Shown piece by piece: positions 36,167 to 53,300 of a stretch of DNA of 64,000 bases; the first letter of the stretch is position 1; each line of letters begins with the position of its first letter. The position numbers and the translations under genes are program-made. The stretch is taken from positions 1-64,000 of the forward strand of contig NW_026924258.1 of NCBI RefSeq assembly GCF_032062105.1, in the 5' to 3' direction. This DNA comes from Saccostrea cucullata (lineage: Eukaryota). The notes under the pieces are model-generated. The model did not search any database. It was not told the origin of the DNA and saw only the letters and a program-made list of their open reading frames with translations.

Positions 36167-36222
36167 ATGGTGTCAAAGCTTTTTTGGTTACTGGTATCAA
36201 CCCTGATATCTTTAGGTAAGTG

Positions 36223-36280
<58 letters not shown>

Positions 36281-37458
36281 TACTGTAAATATATGAATGT
36301 TATGAAGTAACAGGATTAATATGTTGTCAATAGATTTCGCTGATTCTGTTCATAGATCTTGTATCAAAATATGATGATATACTTCAGTTTTCGATATGAA
36401 TACATGTATTTATATATGAAAACGTGTTGTAATTTTATTTTCTCTATTCATTAATATATATTCATTTATATATTTGTATATTTTCATTCATAATAATGCA
36501 TTTATATTACAATATTTTTGCCTCAAGCATAAAAACTATTCTTGTATGAAGGATGTTCAGATCAGAATTGCTTTTTTTTAGTTTACTGATTGTATGACTT
36601 TGATTACATAACTAAACTTAAGACTATATCCAAACCCTCTTTATTCAAATATAAAGCAAATAATAACTTTTGTTAATATACAGTTTTAATTTATTTAATT
36701 CATTTTTTAAAGTGTGTTTTATTCACTTAATAAATTAAAATCTTTTTAAAAAATGAATTTCAGAAAAAATATAAACACATGCACAGATTTAAAAAAAAAT
36801 GAGAATACATGTGTCCTCTTTTTAAAGATCAAAATGTAAGTCCAGGCCCGAGGATCATGAAACAGGCTAAGACTTAAGTCAAATTTTCGATCACCTGAAA
36901 ATTGTTTATTAATTACTGAATTAATCTCAAAATTTGCAAAGAACAGCGCATTTGTGAATCAATATTGAAACTGATCTTAATTTTTAAGTACAGTATGAAG
37001 ATTTTGACTTAAGCTTAAGATGTTTCATAACCCTGGGGCCAGAGTAATTCTTTAACTAATATAAAGCTTTAACTATACAGATAAAACGAATTATTTAGAA
37101 TAACATAACTCGATTAGATGAATAAGCTATGAAATAAAATGTTTAATATCTCGCAGGGCTCAAGTCGGTGTAAGTACCTTAAGGGCATACGTATTTAGAC
37201 ATTATTTTCGGGAAAAAATATTTTCTAAAGCCTCTTTCTTTTAGCTCTTTTTAATAAATGACGCTTTTCAAATCTCTCAAACAAAGCACTGATTTAAACC
37301 AGTAAAACCTCTTCAAACACTTTAGCTGATACACTACATTGTTACGTCACAATTTAAGTTCGATGTGACGTAAGTTTGAGGCTGCATCCACCTTAAAAAA
37401 ATACACACTAACGATAAATGTGTTACATTCTTTTGCGTCTTAGTAAATTGCTAGTTGT

Positions 37459-37500
<42 letters not shown>

Positions 37501-40500
37501 GTATATGTATTCTATTGATTAACCTTGAGTCAGACGTCTTTATATGCCTTTCATTTCTATGGAAAATTAATTTTCTTTTCTCTAATTCTAATATTAAAAA
37601 AATTCCCAGTGGGCCCCTTGTTCCTGCTGGCCATTTGATACACAGTTGTCTTGATTTAGAAAGGTTAATTGTGACGTTGGAGTAGAGTCAAGCAGCTTCA
37701 TGATTACGATCTCGTATAAAATGAGGGAGAAATAAAATAAGATGGACGCAAGAAAACATAAAACGGAGTGCAGCGTCGTAGTCTCCGGACTGATCAGGGC
37801 TAATTTTAGTTTGTAATGTATAAGTGCGATGTGTAGTAAACAACCTATTAAAAAATAAAACAAAGTACTTCTTGTGTTTTAAAATTATCACGAGTGATAT
37901 TGAACGTAATGACGAGAAGATATCAGATTGTAAAGTTTATTTTTATGAAAAAAATCTTTTGCTAATGAATATTATCTCATAAATGAGTCATTGACTAAGA
38001 ATTTCTAGGTCTCTGTGTAACCAATTTGATTTCATTTTCAGTTACAATGCATTAAAATAATACAATTCTGTTAGTACTCCGTTAAATATATGAATGTTAC
38101 GTCACTTTAAGTAATATTATTGAAATTATAAAGCCAGTGGCCCCTTAACCCAAGCCAAACTACTGGTATATAATTGTTCAGTTTAAACATTTTTCAACCT
38201 TGAAGCAAACTTATCATTCTTCGTGTATTCCTTTAATCTGTGTCAATCTTCGAATTCTGCAGTCAAAAATAAAAGAAATGTGGATTAATTAAAATATGCG
38301 TTGCTACGTCGAGAATGGTGAGCTTATAAGAAACCCTGATATCAAACGTCGCCACTCATTTGAAGTGAAGTTATTGTAAACATTTTACGCAGTTGTATTA
38401 TCATCCTAGATTTCTGAACATCTGTTCAAAATTTATTATTTAATGTTTGTTAAGGCCGTGTGTCCCAAACTAAAAATAGATAATTCTATGAGGGACTTAT
38501 TATTCAGTATTTCCTTTATATTGGTTCAAATAATTTTTCGAAAAATGCTTTTCCGATTCAAAAAATCAAAGAAATTACATTTTTTTTCTTAATAAAAAAA
38601 ACACTATCCCGAATTTGTATTGATTGAATGGTTATGAATAAACTATAAATCATTAAATGAAAGCTATTTTGAAAATCTTTCGAAAGTCATTGAAATTTTT
38701 TTTTCAAAAAGAACGAGTTAGACATTTGTTCTTGCGGCCAAATCAAACTTGAGACGTTTAAGGTGATTTGTGATTTTCCCTTCGCGCTCTAAATTAGAAG
38801 CCATGTACACATACGCTAGTATCGCGAGGAGGGAGGGGGGGGGGGCACATCCATATTTTTGAAAACATAACATTTTCATTCGTTGAAAAGCTGAATGCCC
38901 CTACCCCTCCCTTTGCTGCTTAGTTAAAACATGGTATTTTATTAATATATTTCAAAATTTGTTGTTTCTAAAAGAAAGTTGTATCCTACCCTCCCCCTTA
39001 CCCCTCCAAGAAATCAACTTATAAATAAGTTTTGGTAATTGCAGTTCATTTTCATGAATTGCTATGACCGAGTTAACCCTCATGCATATGTCAAAACTAC
39101 TGACACTAATGTAATACTCTTTATCAGATGACAACTCATCAAGAGTGAAACAACAAAAGTATTTTTTTAATAATCACATTTTGAACATTCTTATGATCTT
39201 TGCATGTAAAATATTTTTTTTTACTGAATGTACACGTACCCCCCAGGTCAAGAAGTTTCTAATATTAAATAAAATTTTTATCAAATAGAAGAAAATAATC
39301 AAATTGCACACAGTTTTGATTTCAAGTTAAGTTTTAATTTTTTAATGCATTTGAACTCGGAAGTAATTTTTCAAATTTTAATTTTTGTAGGCATTTGTAC
39401 CCAGAAGAGAGCACTACCGGATCCTAAATCATTTGATGGAATGATGGCAGCCATTTCTTTACCCACAATGCAACAAGAGAACTTCCAGAAAATGTGTTTA
39501 CAAAGTATGAAATTATTCTTTTTTTCAAAGAAGTTTGAATGAGAAAAGAGTGTCACAATCAATTGTTGATTAATTTTTATTCTTCCTTTTTGCTGATATG
39601 ATAAAATAGAGTGTAAAAGGTTCTTATTTTCACGGACATGTTATATACATGTATATGTATTTTTTTAAATTAGTAACTTGTGTATACATAAAGAATTAAG
39701 GAGGCTGGGTGTGCCAACAAATTAACTATGAGTTTTAACTGATTTTTTTTTAGATATATCTTAAGCTGTCAACTCTCATTTAGGAAAGAAAAAATTCATA
39801 CATTTTATTTTTACATTTGATCATTTTTGTATATCTTTATCTGGAGCTCTTCTTCTATAAGGAGATCAATATAGTCTGAAAGTAGCCACAAACATCCAGC
39901 CCTTTTAAAAAAGTTAACTTATAAATAGATCTTCGTTGACAATGAAAACAACCTGAACAAAATTTTCAGATGATTAATATGATAAATATACATTTTCTCA
40001 TATCTTACATAGTATTCTGAAATAAAGTGATTTTTATTCAAAATAAGTGTGTACCCTATATCATTAGGCATTCCTAAATGATGAATAAAACAAAACAGTT
40101 TTTATTTTTAAGTAATTAGGGAAAACGTACAGCTTCATGGTAGGAAAAGACAAACATGTACTTATTTTGTTCAATGCTTCGCTACAAAAATCTGATAATT
40201 TATAGCCATTTTGTCAATGATTTACAGATTTTTTTTCTCCGAATCAATGTTTGTCTAAGGGCAAAACTTTTTTATATCAGGTTTCTATTATTTCGACAAG
40301 CTCTTTAGTGTAGCCGTATCTTTAATTCTGAGTTCATTTAGGATAGTATCGAAAACTCCATTTAATTGATGGAATCAGGAACAGTAAATAAATGGACAAT
40401 CGGAAAAATGAGACGCACACAAAAGCCGCCAGAGGGCGCGAGATTGAACATTGATGGGATGTCAATTTTCTCGGCTTAGCACGTGCCTTTTTGTCTATAA

Positions 40501-41404
40501 ATAGCCCCTATCTTACTTGTAACTTCTTGGCAGGGAAATTCGGATACATAAAAAAAATCTGGCAGATTTTTTTTCTTGGAGACAAGATGTTTAAAAAATC
40601 AATACAAAAGTGAAATTTTGAAAGAAACAAAAATCTGGCTAGACGATTTCTAAGGTTTGGCAAACGAATCATTATCTGATAAGAATACACATATTCAATA
40701 CAGTCATTCAGTTAGAGAGAGACTTATTTGCATTTCAAACTATTTCCGTTTTGCTCCGCGTTAGATAGTTTGTGACACCCTAATCAGGGCTTATCTTTTT
40801 GTACATTAAACACAGTGAACCTAAAAAGTGGAATAACAGATCCATAAATACCCGAGATCTCGTTCAGATCTCGCGTAATTATGTTAATTAACTTACCAAC
40901 AGATAGTTTTAAATGTGTGTAGACGATGGGATTTTCTTGTTTAATGTTCGTATCAGGCTATTTAAATATAAATTGTAAAAAATAATGCACATTACCGCAG
41001 ATTTACGAAGGTGTAAAAATAGCATATTTATACTCGGTGTGAATTACACGTAGTGCATGTGTGATATATTCATGGAGAGAAATTCATATTCCTTTTGAAA
41101 AGCGCAAGATGTGTGACAAAAAACTATTTAATAAATTGTTAAAAAATCAATTTGGCTACATGGATATGCGTAATGCTGTTGCAAGCTTTTATTTGTATTT
41201 TAAAATTATTTGTGTTAAGTTCTCTATTTAGGTATTATATATGTAGGTAACGCTTTCTAAAAAAAACAACAAATTATACATATGTTTCTTGGTAGTTTGC
41301 ATTAGCATCCCAGTATAAATGTACGTAGCGGATGTAGTAATATTGAAAGGGGGTGGGGCATTTCTGGGTCGGGGCACACATCCACATCCAAAAAAAAATT
41401 ATTA

Positions 41405-41454
<50 letters not shown>

Positions 41455-42336
41455 AAAGACCCGGGCCATCTGGGCCCCTTTTAAATCTTTCAGGGACTAC
41501 GACATGCAGCTCTCCTACCCAAGTTGAAGCGTTTTTGTATTTCAAGATTTGGCCATTAAAAGTTTTCTTTATGTTTACCGTTCGCTTGCGCATTAATTGG
41601 TTATTAACACCGAATATGAAAACTAACATAAAAATTAGGAGACCTGAAATTGATAATTGTGATCTGAATCTATGAACTTTGTCATTTTCTGTAATGATCT
41701 TATTATATAATGTAAGGTATATTTTGAGCATTTTATACCTTGATTTTGCTGAAGTATATATATCTTTCTACAAGAAAAATAAATTTATGAATTATGATAA
41801 AAATCCTTTCATTTGAATAACTTTTTTAAATGACTGTTAAGTTAGTGCCCCTCTCCCTAAATAGGTTGGTAGGTTGGTTAGTTATTGAAAGATGGGTGGA
41901 AGCTAGGCACAAAAAAAAAATTGGAAAGGTCTTTTATGGCAAAATGCAGATTTTTATCTCCAAATGATTTACATTGTACAATAATTTAGAAGTATTTTGA
42001 ATTTTTTTTCAGATATACCAACACAGGTTTTACTTCAAGAAGTTTATACTCGAATGGGAAAAGAAGATGCGTCAGTATATAATTCTCTCTTTCTCTCTCA
42101 AACTCTGTATGAACGGATCAGTTGATTTAAAATCGATTTACATCGAAAGCACACCCCATTAAGTCTCTCTCTCTCTCAATATTTTGTTCTTTATTTGTAG
42201 AATGAGTAAAACATTTCCCGAACCTGTTGATCCCATCGAACCAGAATTACAACGGACATCACATGAGGATAGTAGTATCAGGACACAAAAACGTAGGGGA
42301 AGAAATCGAATTTCCGGATTTTACAGTAATTGGTAG
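36167..42336 (+). CDS. Gene D: small secreted prepropeptide / neuropeptide-like precursor (118 aa, 4 coding exons)
   Basis: Exons 36167-36215 (MVSKLFWLLVSTLISL, G|GTAAGT), 39391-39504, 42013-42070 and 42201-42336 join in frame (357 nt): MVSKLFWLLVSTLISLGICTQKRALPDPKSFDGMMAAISLPTMQQENFQKMCLQNIPTQVLLQEVYTRMGKEDAMSKTFPEPVDPIEPELQRTSHEDSSIRTQKRRGRNRISGFYSNW*. AATAAA at 42368. Confidence 0.72.
36226..36277. repeat. (CT)n microsatellite
   Basis: Pure TC dinucleotide run just after the first donor of gene D; another lies at about 37467-37497. Confidence 0.95.
36843..37041. mobile_element. MITE
   Basis: CAGGCCCGAGGATCATGAAACA..CTTAAGTCAAA / TTTGACTTAAG..TGTTTCATAACCCTGGGGCCAG. Confidence 0.6.
41408..41452. 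repeat. (TA)n microsatellite
   Basis: Pure AT dinucleotide run. Confidence 0.95.
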
Positions 42337-44325
42337 ACAAACTTTAAAAGATTCTACCACTGAGAACAATAAAGAAATCTCTGTGTTATTAAAGTATTTA
42401 TGATGTATGCTCGTTAAATAAATGATAAATGCATAATTCTTCCTTGATTTTTTTTTCTTCATACAATGCATATGGGTAATTAAAACTTTATACAACATGT
42501 CCTTTTCATTAAAAATCTATGTTTGAAAAAAAAGATCAAACATGTACACTGTAATAAGTAGAGACTGTCGTCTTCACTCTGAATTTGAATGGGTGAACAT
42601 TAATTATTGCCTTCCTCGGAAGGACGAATACAAAATTGACCGGAGACTGTCTAATTTTGATTGGTGGAAATTACTAGATGCGAAAACTTTCAATTATTTC
42701 ATTGGTTGAAATGCTGTTCAGGCAAAGGGATATAATTTTCTGGTGATTAATGTTTTTAATCATAAAAGAATTTACAAAACGAACAGAAGAAAAGGTCAAA
42801 AAAAGAATCTAAATAATCCTTTTTTTAAATACTTTAATGTCAAGTGGTTCAATATCTTCATGGTAAATACAAATGTTTATTACTCCATCAAACCATTAAA
42901 GCGGTTTCATTGTTTTCCAAATGGATGAAAATGTCTGTAAAAAGCTATTAAAAATCCAGAGCAAAGATAAGCTTTAGGATAATATGCATAGTACAGTTTA
43001 CTTCTTATTTTTGCTAAAAACAGCAAAGCCTTTTGAAAAAGCGTTTACTTGTTCGTCTATCAAAATCCATCTGTGTATATGGCACTGAATAATGCTGTAT
43101 GCGTGTTGACCAATCGGAGAGTGTGTTATAAAAAGAAGTAAACGTATTCAGTTGTTTTATTATATTTTATTTATGACAAATCACTCATAAGTCACATTCA
43201 CTCATAGGGCCCTATCAAACAACCACATTCTTACTATTGTACAACAAAAATAATCATCTCTCATTTTATCGTCCATCAAGAACGGTCTAAAACATATCAA
43301 AAACAAAAGGGCGGATATTTCCGGAACACAAACTTCCATTGTATCACTTGTTATACAGAAAGACCTATTGCTTCGCATATCGAAATATTGTCGTACAAAT
43401 TTTTTGTCTAGTATTTTCTAAATAATAGTTGATTATAGATAAATAAATGTTATTGTGCTTACATATAATAAATAATAATAAATCAGATACATTGATATAA
43501 TGTATATCAAATTTTGCGTATCTAAATGTCTACAAATTTAATCATTAAGTGGTTGAAGTAACTGTTTACATATGAATACGTGTTTGAGAATTGTACTCAA
43601 AAAATCACAAGTGACAAAAAATCATTGGCTAAGTGATAAACTTCAGTAATTACTCCGTATTATCTATATATAGACGAATACTTTTTATATATCGATGTAA
43701 TTGATGGGCCTATTTTATGGCAGCGTTTTATTTGACGTGGTGTAAAAGGTCTCGTGCGTGACACATAACCACGATGCATCTATATCCCGGCGCCTATCAT
43801 TAGCAGTCACTTTACCTATATTGTAAGGAGAAAGACCGCAGCTATGGCAAAAATGCTGCCCACTGGACATCAAACGGTATGCAGCCATAAAATGGTTTAG
43901 ATAAACAGACTGATGTACAAAAAGTGCAGGCATTTATGTATTCGATCAAATACATTTTCTATTTAGAATACCGACGAAAAATCTTACACTTGACAGTAAA
44001 ATCGTATTTTTAAGATATCGTACCTGTGCAGCCTTCGAAAAACATACTAGTATGTTAAATAACTTGATAAATGCGAAATACACTTAAACACAATTTGAAC
44101 ATGACTTTGCGAGAACACAGCTAGAGCAATCTTGCAGAAATATTTCCCGGATTTCATTTCTATATATATTGCGCAAATTACACTAAACGTTACAATGATT
44201 TCGATTTTTTTCTTCAAACTTAAACAATTTTTTTTACTGACGACAGTTAACCAGAATAATAACTTTAAAAATTCTGTGTAACCTGATTAAAAAAATACAA
44301 TATTTCATATTGCACTGTAAAACTT

Positions 44326-47300
44326 TTAGAATCCCAAAGCCTCCACAATCGCGTGCATTACACGCCCTCTATTGGCTGGACCACCCCTTCTTCCCCCTCC
44401 GGCTCCACCTCGCGCCCCGGGACCAAGGCCTAGTTCAGCCGCTTCCGCAGGATCCATCATCATTCCAGCTAACCTTGCTAGATCTCCAAATCCTCCACCA
44501 CCGCCTCGCCTTCGGCCTCCTCCTCCTCCCCACATTCCGCCGCCCCCTCCGGCTCCCCATCCTCCACCGCCACCACCTGCTGCTTGTCCTTGCTGACCTG
44601 CAGGAACATCACCAGCTTCAGGAGCAAGACCGAGCACCTCTTGCCATTGTCTGGACATCCTTCGGCCGCCTCCTCGTCCTCCTGCCGGAGGCCCCCAAGG
44701 ATCAGGACCTGGCTGTGCCCACGGGTCTGCAGCTCCTGCTGCTCCACCGGCCCTTCCTCCTCCTGGGCCCCAAGGATCGGCTGCACCAGCACCACCTGCT
44801 CCTCCCCAGGGATCTGCACCACCACCAGCCACATTCCATGGATCTGCTGCACCCCAGCCGCCTGCCCCACCGCCGGCGCCGCCCATAGCGCCACCTCGTC
44901 TCCGGGCGCCAGCTGCTGGCGGATCTGGGGGTTCAGGAGCTAATCCTAACATCGTGATAAGCTGCTTACTCATGGCAGTTTCTACTGCTCTTTGTACCGG
45001 GTCTGGAGTTGTAGGTGGGGGTGGTGGTTGGTAATTTGATCCGGAACCACCTGACGCAGTGTTGTTGTTGTAATATGCATATTGGTCTTGTCTCTGTCGT
45101 CTTTGCTGTTCTTGACGCTTTCGAATCTGACTTCTGTATCCTTTCCCGACTATATACGGATCCCGTGGGTAGCTTCGTCGTCTTGGGAGCCGAAGGAATC
45201 TTCTCAGCTCTGGTAAAATGTTCAGGACGGCTGTACTTACGGATCCCTTGAGATGGGCAGGATTGATGTTCATGGATCTGAGGAAGTCGGCACCAGTGGC
45301 GTAAAGAAGTGTCATTATGGTTTGTTGGTTTTGTCCCATTGAGCGTATCATGCTTAACATGACGTTTCTGAAATGAAATAATGAAATTTAGATATATGTT
45401 ATTTTATACAGGAAATACAAATGAAAAATCTTTTGTTAAAATGTAACCAGTTTTCTATCAATTTGCAATCGATCGTTAAAAATGAAACACACTTGTTGAG
45501 CGCGTAAAATTAACAAATTTAACAAAATGTTTTATCAGAATTACGAAAAATACGAAGGTCATTCAAAAAGTTCGTAGACTTTTATCCTAACTTTTTTATT
45601 TAACGTCATATTATATCCAAATTTGGTACAAATATTTTAACAACGGAGCACCGTCAAAATTGAATATTTTTCTAATTTTCACTTTATAGTATTTACAGCT
45701 ATACCTCTAATAAATGAAGCTGAAACGAAATAAAATTTACATGTTTAAATAAAGTATTGTTGTATTAATTAAAATGAAATCAGGTTATGTAATATCTCGC
45801 TCCATTTAAAAGACATCAGCTTCTAAATACATAAGGACTTGATTGAAAAAGGCAAAAAGCCATGACGTTGGAGGACGTCACGGAGCAGCAAGTAGCAATA
45901 AAATTAGACTTTACATTCGGGAAACTTCTTCTACAAGCTTAAAAATCTATTTAAACCAGGATCTGTATGAAAAATAATCCGTGTGTTTGTATTAAATTAA
46001 AAATACAATTTTTGAGTGGTATCGAGTTTGAATCGGACGATGAATTGTCTGCAAAGAAACAGGTTAAAGATAAAAATATTGTCAAAAGAGTTAGGAACGT
46101 CATTGAACGTGATGTGTGCTTCAGTGTTGCAGAAATAATAGAGTTGCATAGTAATTTAAAGAATTTGAAAATAATAACATTCTTATTCAAGCTATATTTG
46201 TACAATTGTTAGCAAACTAGGTGTTAAGTGTTGTGGATATGTGTTTTATGGATAAAACTACAAACCGTGTTAGAAATAAAAAAAAATGAGTATACTTCTG
46301 ACAAACTTTCTCTGCGTCGTTGTTTACGTTACAATATTGGATAACCGTGCTCCGTGGTAACAAAACTTGTTGCTTTAAATTTTGGCTAACATGAGTTCTA
46401 TTTAATCAAATGGAATGAAACTTCTCACTTCGACAAAATAAATGTTTATGTTTACGAAAATGTATTGATCTACAATCTTGTAATAATCATATGACGATGA
46501 GAAGCATTGTCTACGTATTTTTTGAATGACCCTCGTACATCTTTACAAATCAAGCAAGAAAACCTAAATCTTCTATAGTCTTGGCTACTTTAACTTTTAT
46601 TATGCTTTATCCCCTTAACAAAGCGTTCGTAATCAAATACATGTAGTTTGCCGGGTTATTGCCATCGTAACGCTACCTCGACCGATCTTCACGTCTCTCA
46701 CCTTGATATTGGATCCACAGACTCGGGGGTCAGATCCTTAACGTCAATAATAACGGGAGGTTCTGTTGGGATCGGGGTTGTTGTAGTTGGAGCCATTGTT
46801 GTGGTAGTTGGTGGAGGTACATTAACTGGAATATCGAACCGAGAGGACCCGACTTCAAGGAAGTTATTCCATTTATTGACATTGTTTCCCATGGACTGGG
46901 TGTCAATATTTATCTGAGTGTTCATCGAGTTCATTTTATTAGCAGAGGATTCTACTCCTAGACCCCAGGCAGCCTGGCTAGATTCTGTAGGAATCGCTTG
47001 TACATTATTGGAAGATTGCATCATGTTAGATGAACTAGAAGAAAAGGATCCACGGCCGCCGCCAGATTGGAATGAATTGGTTGAGTCAAATGTGTTAAAT
47101 GAGTCTGAAACGCTTGTCTTATATGACTTTGAAGAACCCATAGTATCGAAAGAGCCAGCTGCTCCAACTGTATTAGACTTGTCGTAATTATTAACAACGG
47201 AACTGCTACTATATGACAAAGAACCACCAGTCGAAACGCCCCTGCCTTGTGAAGATGCGTCAACTCCACCTGCTCCCACTTGGAACCCAGATAGTGATTG

Positions 47301-50300
47301 AAGGTTAACGAAAGAGGCGTCCCAAGGGGTAGTGGCCTGTGTTGTTGTAGTTGGACGTCTTCTGGTAGTTGTAGGTGGTGGAGCGGCAGTCGTTAAAGGT
47401 GATGGAGCTCTTGTGGTGGGCACTGGTGGCGGGCGTGTAGGAGGCGGTTGTACAACTGGCTGTTTAACCTCTTGAACTCTAACCTCTTTTGTTAATGAAC
47501 CAGCTTTATGCATCTGTCCTCTTGAAGTTGTTTTTCCTTGGCTAGTTGAGGATGCAGATCTCGAGGATGATGAAGAAGAGGCTGAAATACTCTTTGAGGA
47601 AGAAAGGGAAGAGCTTGAAGAAGCTCCTGTATTTTCAACGGAGTAAGCTGCATCCCAAGCTCCTGCAGAATTTCCGATAGTTGACTCAATCGGCAAAGTA
47701 GGGTCTATGAAAGCAGCGTCCCATGAAGATCCAGAAGTTCCAGTCCCTATGTCCATTACAGAAGTTCCAGCACCTATGTCTATTCCACTATTTGCTGTAT
47801 TATCAAAGACGTATGTAGTGTCCCAAACATTATTAGCTGCTGTACCTAAGTTAGCAGTATCCATCATAAGATCAACGTTTCCTGTCAAAGCAGTGTTGCC
47901 CCATTCTGGCGCTATGTTACCCATTCCAATGGAATCAATCATACTGGCATCCATTGTTTGTCCATCTACAGCCATATTTCCAACACCAGTCATGTCCATA
48001 GCTGAGCCACCTGCAACGTTAAAGGAAGAGTCGACAGTTGTTGATGTTTTAGAGGATACAGTGTCAATTTTTGTTTTTTCAACTGCAGGTGCCTCTGTTT
48101 GCGGTGGTAATTGGGTTGCAGGTGCGGCTTCTTTTGTGATCTTTACTTGTGAAGAGGATTCCGAGGCAACATTTGTAGATTTATCTACTACGGTATCTCC
48201 ACGTTGCACTTCTATTTTATTTGTTGCTATTTTATCCTTTTTCACATCTCCTTGCACAACTTCACTAGCAGAAACCAAATTAGATTCTGTTTTTACCGAC
48301 GTTGACGAAGAACTTACAGATTTTTGAGTGTCAACCTTGTTTGCATTATCCAAAGTAGTAGCTGTTGGAGCTCCAGCAATTTGGTTAGTCATCTGAATCT
48401 TCATTGACTGATCTGTAGAATACGGGAATGTTTGTTTGCCGCCCATCTGAACTTTAAGCATGATATCCGTCAGAGCCTTAAACATATTGGCTAATATGGC
48501 ATTTGGATCCCGTGCTGTGTTCTTTGATTTTTCGGCCTGTGTATCAATTTTACTCTCACTTACAGTGCTAGTTTTCGTCGAAATAACAGTATTTTGATCT
48601 CCTTGAGACCTTGTCTTTGTGTTTCCACCTGTAACTGTTTGTTCCACGGATGCTGACATCAATGTTTTACTGTTTTCATTTCCACGTAATCCATCAACTT
48701 TATTTGCTGTTCTGCTTGTTTCTATAGTTGATTTTGAGTCTGTTTTTCCTTTGCTCGTAACTTCTGTATTAATTTTGCTTGTTTCTACAGCTGTCTTTCT
48801 TTCAGCTGTGGAGGAACCTTCTGTTTTTGTCACTTCAACAGTGTTGAATTGAGTATCTTTTGTCACTTCAGAGGTAGAAATTGATGAATGTGCAGATTTT
48901 CCTGTAATGCTTTGACTAGGAGCAAGCGATTGTGCTGTAACTGCTTTAAGCTGAGGGATAGGTCTGTCTCCCATATCAATTTGTTCATTAGTGGACACGA
49001 TGACTTGTTTAATTATAGGTGCTGGAGGTGGAGTTAATTTACTAGATGATTTTTCCGCAGATAATACAGTGTAAGAGGAATCCGATTGACCCGTCATTGA
49101 TTTTTCCACTTTTGAATTTGATTGAATTGAAGACGATTTCATTTCAGATAGAGATGATGATGACATAACTGAAATATCAGCGCCGTGAGTTAAGGGTTTA
49201 GATGCCTTTACCGGCTCTGTTGTAATTTCTTGTGTTGTTGGAGCTTCAGTTGTCGTAGTTGGGGCCTGTGTCGATGTTGTAGTCGTTGGTTCCTTTGTAG
49301 TTGTTGTTGAACGTCTAGTCGTCGTTGTTGGTGTTGTTGTTGGGGTTGTCGTTGGTGCTTGTGTGGTTGTTAGAACCTCTGTGGTCGTCGGTGCCATCGT
49401 AGTTGTCGTCGTAGCTTCTGTCGTTGTAGTAGATGTCGTAGTTGTGGCTTCCGTCGTAGTAGTTGGGGCGGCTGTTGTTGAAGTGGTAGGAGGAGGAGTG
49501 GTTTCTGGTAAAGAAGTTACGAATCCCATTCCAAACGTTGAGTCGTGTGCAACTTGGCCACCTGCAGAGAGAACTGGACCAACTTCTAAAGCTGTTGTAT
49601 CTGTCAATCGCAGGAGTGTATGGTCTATTCCACTAGGAATGATTCCAGCATCATAACCAGACGAAAGCGCGTGGCCACCAAAATTTGATGAAATCATGGA
49701 GCCTTGATTAACATTATCATTTGGGGAACCTTGAGAGAAACTTATATCAGCTGCTGATGATCCTGTGCCCCACTGGTCCAAACCGCTCATCATATTCGTG
49801 TCATATTGAACAAATGTACCAGTGTTTTGCATTCCTGGTGCACTATCAATCATCATATTTGGTTCCCCAGGAGGAAGGGGTATTGATTCCACTGGGCCTG
49901 CAGTCAAAAATTGTTCGCCAGCATTGCTTGCAAAAGAAGACTGAGATGTTAAAGATGAGGTTTGATCCAATAATAATGAATCCATTGTTTGGGCATTTGA
50001 TCCAGAGGTAGGTAACCAGGTATCACCTCCCATGTTTGGCTGAGGATCTGGTGGCAAATTAAAATTGAATTGATAAGGATCGTTCATGCCATACTGAAGC
50101 CCTAACCCTTGATTAAGTCCTTCTACGACCAAATTCTGATTTTGTTGTGCATTTTCTATACCATTTGAAATTCCCCATTGACTGCTACCTTGACCACCAA
50201 TGTTGATACTTCCCTTTATAAGAATTGGGTTTGAAATCAACTGATCATTGGTCTGTGCTGCTTGAGAAGTTTTCAAATTCGATCCACTGTCCGGTGGAAG

Positions 50301-53300
50301 CGTACTTGGTGGTATTTGTGGTGGAAGTGTTGTTTCAACAATCCCAGAAGTTTTGGATTTCTGAGAGGAAGAATCTTGAACAATTTTGGAATTCACTTCT
50401 AGAACAGTCGCACCGGTCGTGACTTCATTTGGCAGAATAGTGATGACTTCTAAATTTTTCATAGTACTCGATTCCACAGGTTGTTGAATATTGATATCTC
50501 CATTCAGAGTTTGACGAGTTTCTTTGGTGGTCTCTACTTTCAGGCTTCCTTGGTTAGGAATGACTTCCCATTTTCCTCCATTGGAGAACATGCTAGAACC
50601 AGACGATGCACTGTTTGATTGCGAACTTGAAGATACTGAAAAGGAGGATGATGAGGAAGAAAAGGAAGAAGACGAAACCATGGGCTTTGAAGATATCTTC
50701 CTCACCGTTGTTGTATTGACCTCAACCGACTCGGTTCTGGGAGTGTCAGGTCGAACTTGTTGCGAGTTAGATGCTAGTTTATGTGCAATTTTTCGGGAAG
50801 GATTGGGTTCTCTCTTCTCTAACAATATTTTTTCTATCGCTTCAGATTTTACATTTGGTAAAAAGTTATTAGGATTCAGAGTTTTGCTGGTATCTTTGTT
50901 TCTTTGGCCCATCAATGTGAGTTCACGTCTGGCAGAAAAAGAATTCGTAGCTTCTTTCCGTGGGGAGAAGTTTCCGCCCAGTGTGACTTCCATTCTCTGT
51001 GTTTGTGTGTTTGCAGTATTAACTCTGTTTTTACCCTCCTCTACTGTTTGGATATCTTCTTTAACTTTCACCCTTTGATTGTCTATCTGCTTTTCCTGTT
51101 GTAGAGTTACTTGTCCTGATTCTTTTGTGGATGACACTACTTCAGATCTAACCTCAGGAATAACCGGCTTCTGCATCTTTGTTTCAGCTTCCATCGACAC
51201 CTGGCCTACGTCTTGATGTCTCTGACTTGACATCTTCTGGGTCATTAAAAAGGAATTTTTGGCTTCAGTTTCAGACACTTGAGACATTTTACTGTATCCA
51301 AGATCAGCTGGGCGGCTAGAGAGTGATCCTCCGGTAATAGTAAGAGAGGGCCCCGACATTGACGAGGGAAGTACGTAATTGTTGTTATTGCTGGGAATAA
51401 CAACAGTCTGAGGATATAAAGCCTCGCTTTCGGGTTTAGATGATTTTTGATCTACAATGACTTCAGTTCTTTTAATGGAAACTGTTTTGTCTGTCTTTGT
51501 CTGTGGAGCTACTAATTCTCTTGATTTTGTTTTAGCGGAAATCACCGGCTTTGATAATACCAATTCCTTTTCTAACGTGGATCCTTTATTGATTTTGGAA
51601 GAAACATTAATTTTCGGTAATGCAGGTTGTGACAAGGCTGGCTTTGTCTCTTTGTCCATATTTGTTGTATCGATTTTAACGTTTTCAGTCTGTGTTGTCA
51701 AAACATCTGACTTTGCCTCGTTTTGAGTTTGGATTTCAGCTCCAGACATCTGGTGACCATTTGAAGATATGTGCTTTGTTATAGTTGTATTTGTGATATT
51801 TGTTGAAATTGAAGGACGATTTACGTTAGACCGGACCTGCTGATTTACGTTCACCTCTGCAGATCCACCAAGGGTTTGTATTGGCACGCCTCCAGATCCA
51901 CTAAAAGATGACATTCTATTTAAAATAGTTTTCCCGTTGAGAAAATCTCTCGCAGAGATTCTTAAGCCGCCTTGATTTCTGCTCTGGACAAAAGATGGTG
52001 TTACTCCGCGGTTCTTCTTTCTTATCTCGGTACGGATTACTTTTTTAATACCACTGGGTGTATTTGTGACTTGAACGGTTTGAATAGTCTCAGCATTTCC
52101 ACCTTGTTTCACGTGTTTTACAAGCTTTCTTAGTTTCTCTAAAGCCAAGGAAACAGCTGAATGTGGTTTTCTGTCTATTCCGCTATGGGTGTTGTTAACA
52201 ACAAAAGAGACGGTATGAACCGTTTTTGGTCCTGGGATCCCCGGAATCACCCTTGATGCCAACCCACTTCTGATTGGTACTGAACTGTCAAAGCCCGAGG
52301 AGGATTCCGATCCTGAGGTTGCTGATGACGCTGACCATTTTACAGACCTTAAAGGAGATGACTGGGACATTGAAGAAGATGAAGACGAAGTTGATGAAGA
52401 TTTAACAACCATAGAGGAAGATCCCATATTTGTCTTGATTGGTGGAAATGGAGGGGAAATAAGCCCAGTTTGTCCTTTCATTGAACCCAGAAGCCCGGAT
52501 GTGTGGCCAGTGTTCCCATTAGCATTAGATCCTGAAAAACTCAATGTGGTTTTCTTTACAGAGAAAGTTCCATGTGCCTGAGTAACTGGGTTTGGAGTCA
52601 CTAGCGTAGTTCTTTTTGAGCGAGATAAAATCTTTCCATTAAACTCTGAGGTTGACTTAAATCGATTAAGAAGGTCTGTAGGATTGATTGTTTCTTTAGC
52701 CTCTGCACCTACTTTGGCGTCGGTGGCCACTTGTTCTTCTACATTTGCCGCTCCCTCCCCGAGGTAAGGCAGCATAATGCCCTTGGGTTTCGGCACATTT
52801 CCAATTGAGACGCTTGGAAAAGCAACATCGACGTCCTTCCTCATCTGCACCTCATTATTAGCCACCTTATTCGATGTGCGAACATTTCCATTAAAATCAA
52901 AAATAGGTACAATTGGTTCGAGTTTGGCTTCGTTTTGTAAGTATCTAAATTCCGATCCCGATGTTTGTTTTTCAGTCGTAGAGGATTTGATATTTCTTTT
53001 GAGAATCGCTTCAGGTGGTAGGATGGCTATGTCTGCGCAGTTGTAATATTCCTCTTGTGGTCCACATCCGGTACGGCTGGTGCCATCCGGGCACTTTCCC
53101 CAGTTCATAGCTGCAATAAAGAACCAAAATTTATTTTGATAACATAATTATTTTGGTAACCATAGTTATTTATTTTTTTAACAAATACTGATCACAACTA
53201 CTAAACAATGATTTTGAAAGTCGTTTGGTGTATTTTTATTTACGACCTTAATATTGAGAGTGACTTAAAAGCTATACATATGTAGTAGTCCGAAGAATTA

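Follow-up and report, generated by a model that had tools for sequence, protein, structure and literature searches.

Positions 36167 to 42336 of the window, by which we mean the whole 64,000-nucleotide stretch of Saccostrea cucullata DNA analysed (contig NW_026924258.1, positions 1 to 64,000), contain LOC134266044, a real, single-copy, four-exon gene that is already annotated in RefSeq. The locus is under strong purifying selection. From its layout and conservation, we lean modestly towards an unnamed peptide-hormone or neuropeptide precursor, which would be processed to release a C-terminal octapeptide of the form xSxFYSNW with a presumed signalling role. Peptides control reproduction, settlement and stress responses in oysters, which are of major importance in aquaculture and as reef builders.

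The features of the locus, all on the + strand, are as follows.

35923-35954, +, conserved upstream block, a GC-rich element TCGGGGGCGA with TATAAAT at 35945-35951
35990-36215, +, exon 1 including the 5'UTR; the start is approximate and may be at or before 35922
36167-36215, +, exon 1 coding part, 49 nt; residues 1-16 and the first base of codon 17, the predicted signal peptide
39391-39504, +, exon 2, 114 nt; residues 17-54 and the first base of codon 55; it carries GICTQ, then KR (39405-39410), then a near-invariant stretch that starts with ALPDPKS and includes Cys52
42013-42070, +, exon 3, 58 nt; residues 55-73 plus two bases of codon 74, with the conserved R-x-G-[KR] site at 42051-42062
42201-42336, +, exon 4 coding part, 136 nt including TAG at 42334-42336; acidic Pro-rich spacer, basic cluster KRRGRNR (42289-42309) and octapeptide ISGFYSNW (42310-42333), with TAG directly after
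42368-42373, +, AATAAA hexamer 32 nt past the stop, candidate polyA signal

Joined by script, the four small exons (phases 1, 1 and 2) stay in frame and give a 357-nt CDS for 118 aa with a single terminal stop; all introns are GT-AG. This confirms the exon model of an earlier, sequence-only reading. The same reading regarded the gene as hidden, which does not hold: the product is identical, letter for letter, to XP_062604259.1 ("uncharacterized protein LOC134266044", Saccostrea cucullata RefSeq), and orthologs are annotated in five other oyster species, every one of them named 'uncharacterized'. Since the product equals the RefSeq protein exactly and is under strong purifying selection, the gene lies far beyond chance. 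Exons 2 and 4 matched only themselves in the S. cucullata genome, and no paralogs of either were found there. The donor of exon 1 is TAG/gtaagt. The third donor (exon 3, at 42071) is weak, TGC/gtcagt; other oysters have gtaagt at that position. An alternative GT lies 4 bases downstream (42075); splicing there would change the frame and bring in an early stop, and the C-terminal peptide would be lost.

Orthologs of 114-119 aa occur in S. echinata, Crassostrea/Magallana, C. virginica and Ostrea edulis, that is, in four oyster genera including Saccostrea. The four-exon structure, with exon lengths and phases (the 58-nt exon 3 included), is identical in four oyster genomes, and the flanking genes are conserved around the orthologs. 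Spliced transcripts joining the exons do exist, in the genus Crassostrea: an uninterrupted 114-aa CDS was found on RNA-derived Logan contigs of 1-1.6 kb from at least three SRA series, and these contigs align to exons 2-4 of the window and to the 5'UTR, which is colinear with the Crassostrea transcript. As a separate observation, the C. gigas visceral-ganglion study deposited its data under a BioProject other than that of the Crassostrea contig runs.

Between genera, dS is about 1-3, that is, synonymous sites are saturated. The dN/dS was 0.02-0.16 for residues 20-78, at most 0.06 for residues 103-118 and 0.11-0.73 for the acidic spacer; the spacer excepted, no coding part is less conserved than the signal region. 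Invariant across oysters are G17, C19, TQKR, R68, G70, QKR and ISGFYSNW-stop, giving the motifs GxCTQKR, RxG[KR] and QKR (104-105). In four oyster genera ISGFYSNW is unchanged and the spacer divergent, a pattern that the sequence-only reading had named as supporting evidence. That reading overlooked the constraint on residues 20-78. This part is as constrained as the C-terminus, and its conservation continues through the putative RxG[KR] site into DxMSK. Such conservation exceeds that of a typical propeptide and would also suit an uncleaved small secreted protein.

The upstream block is single copy in the S. cucullata genome and invariant in S. cucullata, S. echinata, Crassostrea, C. virginica and O. 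edulis despite the saturated synonymous sites. Crassostrea transcript contigs begin on both sides of it, and it would belong either to the proximal promoter or to the beginning of the 5'UTR. Downstream, the candidate polyA signal previously pointed out is present, but it weighs little as evidence, because the region is about 70% A+T, the position of the hexamer is not conserved among oysters, and Crassostrea transcripts extend 390-870 nt beyond the stop.

The protein begins with one Lys (K4), a 12-residue hydrophobic core, and then S-L-G or G-I-C at -3/-1, as judged by heuristics only; no other segment of the protein is hydrophobic. The KR is present at residues 22-23, five residues past the likely signal cleavage site. 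Residues 72-103 are acidic and Pro-rich (8 D/E versus 3 K/R, pI 4.3), and the last 13 residues form a cationic, aromatic C-terminus (pI 11.7). The hydrophobic N-terminus, the KR, the acidic Pro-rich spacer and KRRGRNR-ISGFYSNW-stop described earlier were all recovered. The Trp codon TGG stands directly before TAG here and in all orthologs, so the C-terminus carries no amidation signal. The basic sites are invariant or conservatively kept: KR22-23, RxG[KR]68-71, and QKR104-105 with R/K110.

A Pfam search (E <= 10) returned no domain, only one sub-threshold chance match, and the AlphaFold2 model is mostly coil with short helices (mean pLDDT 53, pTM 0.17). Both results speak against a globular folded domain, and a low-confidence, coil-rich model is expected for a precursor. 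In an ESM Atlas feature search, nine of the ten neighbour clusters listed were neuropeptide or hormone precursors (NPFF, myosuppressin, UTS2B, DH31, FARP, gastrin, QRFP, NMU, TAC3). Their scores of 0.88-0.90 are borderline, being reached by 4-10% of shuffled sequences, and indicate no single family. With exon 4 alone, the same search gave no usable match.

We suggest the following processing of the precursor. The N-terminal 17-19 residues would be removed as a cleavable signal peptide. Prohormone convertases would then cut at the invariant KR22-23, possibly at R-x-G-[KR]68-71, and at the QKR..R/K cluster 104-110. The last cut would free the non-amidated C-terminal octapeptide ISGFYSNW (family motif xSxFYSNW), for which a monoisotopic mass of 972.434 Da was computed. 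A larger conserved N-terminal peptide starting from ALPDPKS may also be freed; it would have 46 aa and could be amidated if RxG[KR] is used. Such a second product, beyond a simple signal-spacer-peptide design, is probable because residues 20-78 are constrained like the C-terminus and include the invariant KR and RxG[KR]. The acidic spacer would be discarded. The protein is presumably secreted and may be expressed in neural cells, and the released products may act as intercellular signals, as neuropeptides or hormones. The view of the locus as an undescribed signalling-peptide precursor is partly supported.

A likely relative was found in a chiton. The entry acanthochitonaCrinita.67160 is an unclassified member of an automated 'neuropeptidome' set (De Oliveira et al. 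2019, PMC6425005), and this Acanthochitona crinita protein of about 108 aa passed SignalP 4.0 in the source study (PMC6425005). Compared by eye, its mature part begins with (A)LPAHKS, similar to the oyster ALPDPKS, has two Cys, and ends with QKQRR-QSSFYSNW-stop, so that Q-K, a basic site and xSxFYSNW-stop follow one another as in the oyster protein. The middle could not be aligned by eye, the ICTQKR insert is absent in the chiton, and the Cys positions differ, both being in the mature chain in the chiton whereas one lies before KR in oysters. In an entry set this large, a C-terminal FYSNW 5-mer would turn up by chance with a probability of about 1e-4. The chiton C-terminus, with xSSFYSNW-stop following RR, adds to the conservation that the sequence-only reading had asked for. 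With the chiton linked by motifs seen by eye, six oyster species and A. crinita share a secreted-type protein of about 110 aa with a basic site before xSxFYSNW-stop. We tentatively propose, at somewhat less than even confidence, that xSxFYSNW is an ancient pan-molluscan non-amidated neuropeptide that may be common to Polyplacophora and Bivalvia, may predate the major class split and would stand outside all published neuropeptide catalogues; its precursor, an orphan gene, would co-encode a peptide of about 46 aa starting with ALPxxKS and so yield two ligands.

Of the other explanations, a small secreted protein that stays uncut fares best, and we regard it as possible, if rather doubtful. A chain of about 100 aa would act whole, in immune or antimicrobial defence, in matrix or mucus, or as a gamete protein or pheromone; Cys19 and Cys52 might form a disulfide, and the basic cluster with the aromatic C-terminus would be a binding tail. 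The strong, continuous conservation of residues 20-78 across the putative internal cleavage site suits this explanation, as do the cationic, aromatic C-terminal 13 residues and the absence from the neuropeptide supplements checked for oysters, scallops and molluscs. Two invariant Cys straddle KR22-23, Cys19 upstream and Cys52 downstream, and a bridge between them, if formed, would complicate a simple cleavage scheme. However, the chiton mature chain starts with (A)LPAHKS right after the signal peptide, and this start matches the oyster sequence directly after KR, which is an argument for cleavage at KR. Both lineages also keep a basic site ahead of xSxFYSNW, although built from different residues (RR for the chiton, RxK/RxR for oysters), no folded domain was detected, and the ESM neighbours are nearly all prohormones.

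It is unlikely that the protein is a diverged member of a named neuropeptide or hormone family beyond the reach of sequence searches. Short peptides do diverge quickly, the ESM neighbours are known families, and the searches for distant relatives were limited in scope: the exhaustive one used exon 4 only as the query and returned a single match, S. echinata XP_061195002.1 (82% identical), and the word-seeded searches with a protein and a profile returned oysters only, plus genomic fragments reading through into introns. On the other hand, Pfam gave no match, the ESM neighbours fall in ten families, and their shared-feature counts of 138-153 fall short of the 170 that true members of a family typically reach. 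NPFF, myosuppressin, urotensin-2B and QRFP precursors have the same overall build, in which a signal peptide and a spacer with little structure lead to a basic site and a peptide at or near the C-terminus, but they have no sequence or family relationship to the oyster protein.

Wamide/MIP and kinin peptides are likewise short, with an aromatic, Trp-containing C-terminus. They are amidated, their last residue being followed by Gly and a basic site, and usually multi-copy, whereas here W is last before TAG, the peptide is single copy and the F-to-W spacing differs. A terminal W followed by the stop excludes the Wamide/MIP and kinin (FxxWG/S-amide) types; Wamide/MIP membership was rejected since Gly and a basic site are lacking in all orthologs. 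Resemblances to kinin, Wamide, pedal-peptide/orcokinin, PDF and CRH/ELH-like peptides fail on amidation, copy number or motif spacing.

In searchable paper text, the FYSNW 5-mer occurred in one unrelated malaria paper only, and a literature search by gene and protein IDs found no paper; one by the run numbers behind the Crassostrea contigs led to unrelated papers only. The family motifs were absent from the supplements of four oyster, scallop and mollusc neuropeptide papers (PMC4200219, PMC8398477, PMC5996578, PMC8557429); in the oyster visceral-ganglion survey (PMC8398477), the motif and gene IDs were absent from both text and supplements, which counts against the precursor reading. A single-cell larval atlas supplement had no entry for the protein. 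With Pfam and the neuropeptide supplements checked, no match to a named or non-secreted family emerged, in line with the sequence-only reading.

A membrane-anchored micro-protein, with the N-terminal stretch as an uncleaved signal anchor, would fit the sole hydrophobic segment being N-terminal, but we consider it decidedly unlikely. The core of only about 12 residues is too short for a membrane helix and has small residues at -3/-1 (S-L-G or G-I-C), the signal region is poorly conserved, and the chiton relative passed SignalP 4.0 in its source study, a program able to tell signal peptides and transmembrane segments apart. Least probable of all is that the open frames line up by chance, or that gene prediction produced an artefact without a functional product: the third donor is weak and the splicing evidence comes from Crassostrea rather than S. 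cucullata, but dN/dS far below 1 with saturated dS, the exon structure shared by four genomes, conserved synteny and spliced Crassostrea transcripts already make it very unlikely.

If the favoured precursor reading is correct, an unnamed precursor with an octapeptide conserved from oyster to chiton would add one, possibly two, orphan ligands to molluscs. The result also shows that micro-genes labelled "uncharacterized" in RefSeq can harbour families which neuropeptide surveys driven by similarity have overlooked. The finding extends a well-known class by a small step and reveals no new kind of system.

The closest parallels are the lineage-restricted precursors Cragi-GNamide, Cragi-LXRY, Cragi-GSWN and Cragi-RTLFamide from the C. 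gigas visceral-ganglion transcriptome (PMC8398477). They share no sequence with the present protein and differ from it in that the Cragi peptides were MS-detected and are ganglion-expressed. In overall design they are similar, with about 100-150 aa, a signal peptide, basic sites, a distribution limited to bivalves or molluscs, and one short conserved peptide beside a longer second peptide.

The gene LOC134266044 was assembled from splice landmarks found by script, and its exons were joined for translation in the same way. The resulting model is as follows:

36167-36215, plus strand, exon 1 (CDS), donor TAG/gtaagt
39391-39504, plus strand, exon 2, acceptor ...tttgtag, donor AAA/gtatga
42013-42070, plus strand, exon 3, acceptor ...ttttcag, donor TGC/gtcagt
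42201-42336, plus strand, exon 4, acceptor ...tttgtag, stop codon TAG at 42334

The joined CDS (357 nt, phases 1, 1, 2) encodes 118 aa with a single terminal stop, and exon-by-exon translations show a signal-like N-terminus, KR-ALPDP, RMGKED and KRRGRNR-ISGFYSNW-stop. Thus, the sequence-only reading, which proposed a four-exon prepropeptide gene ending in the octapeptide ISGFYSNW, described the gene accurately. The third donor (42071-42078) is weakened in S. cucullata (gtcagt, versus gtaagt in S. echinata, C. virginica and O. edulis), and script translation of the S. cucullata alternative, a GT four bases downstream, runs into an early stop. Exons 2 and 4 are each present in one copy in the 1.17-Gb S. 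cucullata assembly. No convincing ORFs were found in the introns, which hold nothing but microsatellites of the (TC)n and (AT)n types. Introns 1 and 2 carry perfect (TC)26 at 36226-36277, beginning only 11 nt past the exon 1 donor, (TC)16 at 37467-37498 and (AT)22 at 41408-41452.

Database searches were run exon by exon and then with database proteins or their alignments as queries. With exon 4 (window:42202-42333), an exhaustive representative search returned one protein, XP_061195002.1 ("uncharacterized protein LOC133203177", 114 aa) of Saccostrea echinata, with 82% identity over the exon and a match reaching the C-terminus of the protein. XP_061195002.1 is colinear with all four exons of the window, including junction-spanning residues. 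Using this protein and then a profile from ortholog alignment A2 as queries, we found the following orthologs:

S. cucullata, XP_062604259.1 (LOC134266044), 118 aa
Crassostrea angulata, XP_052693271.1 (LOC128171532), 114 aa
Magallana gigas, LOC105319775 / LOC105319161, 114 aa
Ostrea edulis, LOC125661754, 119 aa
C. virginica, LOC111115645, 117 aa

The script-joined model is identical to XP_062604259.1 at every residue. The gene itself is therefore already known as an annotation, and it is labelled "uncharacterized" in every ortholog species. Near-identical products are encoded by two annotated loci in S. echinata (LOC133203177 and LOC133174445) and in M. gigas (LOC105319775 and LOC105319161); these are probably haplotigs or alleles rather than paralogs, because the S. 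cucullata genome has one copy.

In Crassostrea, 1-1.6 kb Logan contigs (runs SRR84271xx, SRR2645896x and SRR326223xx) carry the full 114-aa CDS without interruption, while the corresponding genomic genes span about 6.7-7.3 kb; hence, these contigs are spliced RNA. One of them, L002, aligns with exons 2, 3 and 4 of the window and with 35922-35980, 5' of the ATG. When the exons were mapped exactly onto the genomes of O. edulis, C. virginica and S. echinata, the phases proved unchanged and the lengths were 49 (64 in Ostrea), 114, 58 and 124-136 nt. The neighbours are also conserved, namely an Ig I-set gene upstream and a gene for a protein of ~2650 aa downstream on the minus strand. The S. echinata copy of the latter bears LPMO_10, and the other two copies have no recorded Pfam hit.

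In the ortholog protein alignments A1-A3, the N-terminus consists of one Lys, a 12-residue hydrophobic core and S-L-G-I-C, with G17, C19 and T20-Q-K-R23 invariant. The stretch from A24 to Q54, which begins with ALPDPKS and contains Cys52, is almost invariant, and residues 56-78 follow the pattern I-P-T-x-V-L-L-x-E-x-Y-x-R-x-G-[KR]-[ED]-D-x-M-S-K. Residues 79-102 form an acidic, Pro-rich, variable spacer with indels (pI 4.3). The C-terminal pattern is I-x-x-Q-K-R-[RG]-G-R-[NH]-[RK], followed by invariant ISGFYSNW and a stop. Between oyster genera, dN/dS (Nei-Gojobori) was 0.02-0.16 for residues 20-78, at most 0.06 for residues 103-118 and 0.11-0.73 for the spacer, with dS of about 1-3, so that synonymous sites are near or past saturation. 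The layout proposed earlier (signal peptide, dibasic site, acidic spacer and short C-terminal peptide) has the features described, but it missed that the strongly constrained parts are two in number, of which the N-terminal one is larger.

Judging from the residues present, the C-terminal Trp cannot be amidated because it is not followed by Gly. R-x-G-[KR] is compatible with an RxxK/R convertase site in which Gly would serve as the amide donor, and its use would yield a 46-residue amidated peptide; such cleavage is weakly supported, since conservation runs on beyond the site. The predicted [M+H]+ values are 973.441 for ISGFYSNW and 1612.809 for RGRNRISGFYSNW; for the 24-69 peptide, the predicted mass is 5255.57 (5254.58 when amidated).

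Among proteins sharing several 5-mers or matching exon 4, the protein searches found no relative outside oysters. A text search of the accessible supplements gave one non-oyster entry, acanthochitonaCrinita.67160, from the chiton Acanthochitona crinita. It belongs to an automated secreted/"neuropeptidome" dataset filtered by SignalP 4.0 and the absence of known folded domains, and the available text of that paper assigns it to no family (De Oliveira et al. 2019, PMC6425005). In the supplement entry, the protein has 108 aa, a signal peptide, a mature part from (A)LPAHKS, two Cys and the C-terminus ...QKQRR-QSSFYSNW-stop. Among about 3000 C-termini, FYSNW would turn up by chance as the terminal 5-mer with a probability of ~1e-4, and the ALPxxKS N-terminal match and the Q-K-basic context are additional to it. 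From these motifs, compared by eye, we take the chiton protein to be a true relative. This would imply that an xSxFYSNW octapeptide is released behind a basic site and that the mature chain begins at ALP..., the latter supporting cleavage at KR22-23 in oysters.

Based on the above results, we are inclined to regard the product of LOC134266044 as an unnamed peptide-hormone or neuropeptide precursor following the standard processing route. The signal peptide would be removed and a convertase would cut at the conserved basic sites, thereby freeing ISGFYSNW along with a larger N-terminal peptide. The main alternative, a small secreted protein that stays unprocessed, seems less likely; in its favour, residues 20-78 are conserved continuously and a Cys pair straddles KR, and against it, the chiton motifs speak for cleavage at that very site.

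Membership of a known family, so far unrecognised, is a minor possibility. No domain of the oyster protein was matched in Pfam. AlphaFold2 with a six-sequence alignment gave a mean pLDDT of 53, short helices (31-35, 44-52 and 58-70) and coil from 71 to the C-terminus. In an ESM Atlas feature search with C. angulata XP_052693271.1, nine of the ten listed clusters were neuropeptide or hormone precursors (NPFF, myosuppressin, UTS2B, DH31, FARP, gastrin/CCK, QRFP, NMU and tachykinin-3), the tenth being the small protein Frey; scores of 0.88-0.90 with 136-153 shared features are at a borderline level, with no dominant family. These neighbours support the precursor class without pointing to membership of one family. 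The FYSNW motif and gene IDs were not found in searchable paper text or in the accessible supplements of oyster, scallop and spiralian neuropeptide surveys, and the available mollusc-specific precursor list of a visceral-ganglion study contains no protein resembling this product. A signal-anchored micro-protein and an artefact are likewise minor alternatives. With the precursor reading, the new part is the proposed family and its putative function, which would join a familiar class.

Upstream of the gene, one further conserved element was found:

35923-35954, plus strand, conserved non-coding block, GC-rich element and TATAAAT, 215-245 nt upstream of the ATG

The block reads TCGGGGGCGA...TCGGATATAAATTGA, is invariant over four oyster genera and is unique in the S. 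cucullata genome; its GC-rich element resembles an EGR-type site. Since Crassostrea contigs start both upstream of TATAAAT and about 40 nt downstream of it, the block is the core promoter or else the beginning of the 5'UTR.

Downstream, a single open frame on the minus strand (46698-53108, start ...GCGPQEEYYNCADIAI) encodes 2136 aa, Ser/Thr-rich with mucin-like TTTxAPTTT runs and without a Pfam match in that part. In S. echinata, the syntenic neighbour encodes a protein of 2642 aa with LPMO_10, and the frame is probably the giant mucin-like exon of a gene with an LPMO domain. Another minus-strand frame (44326-45360, 344 aa, local GC 0.43 versus about 0.31) is rich in Gly, Ala, Pro and Trp with repeated ADPWG-like units; given its location, it may form the 3'-terminal exon of this LPMO-like gene. 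Finally, 131 N in a row at 12911-13041 mark an assembly gap or a masked stretch.
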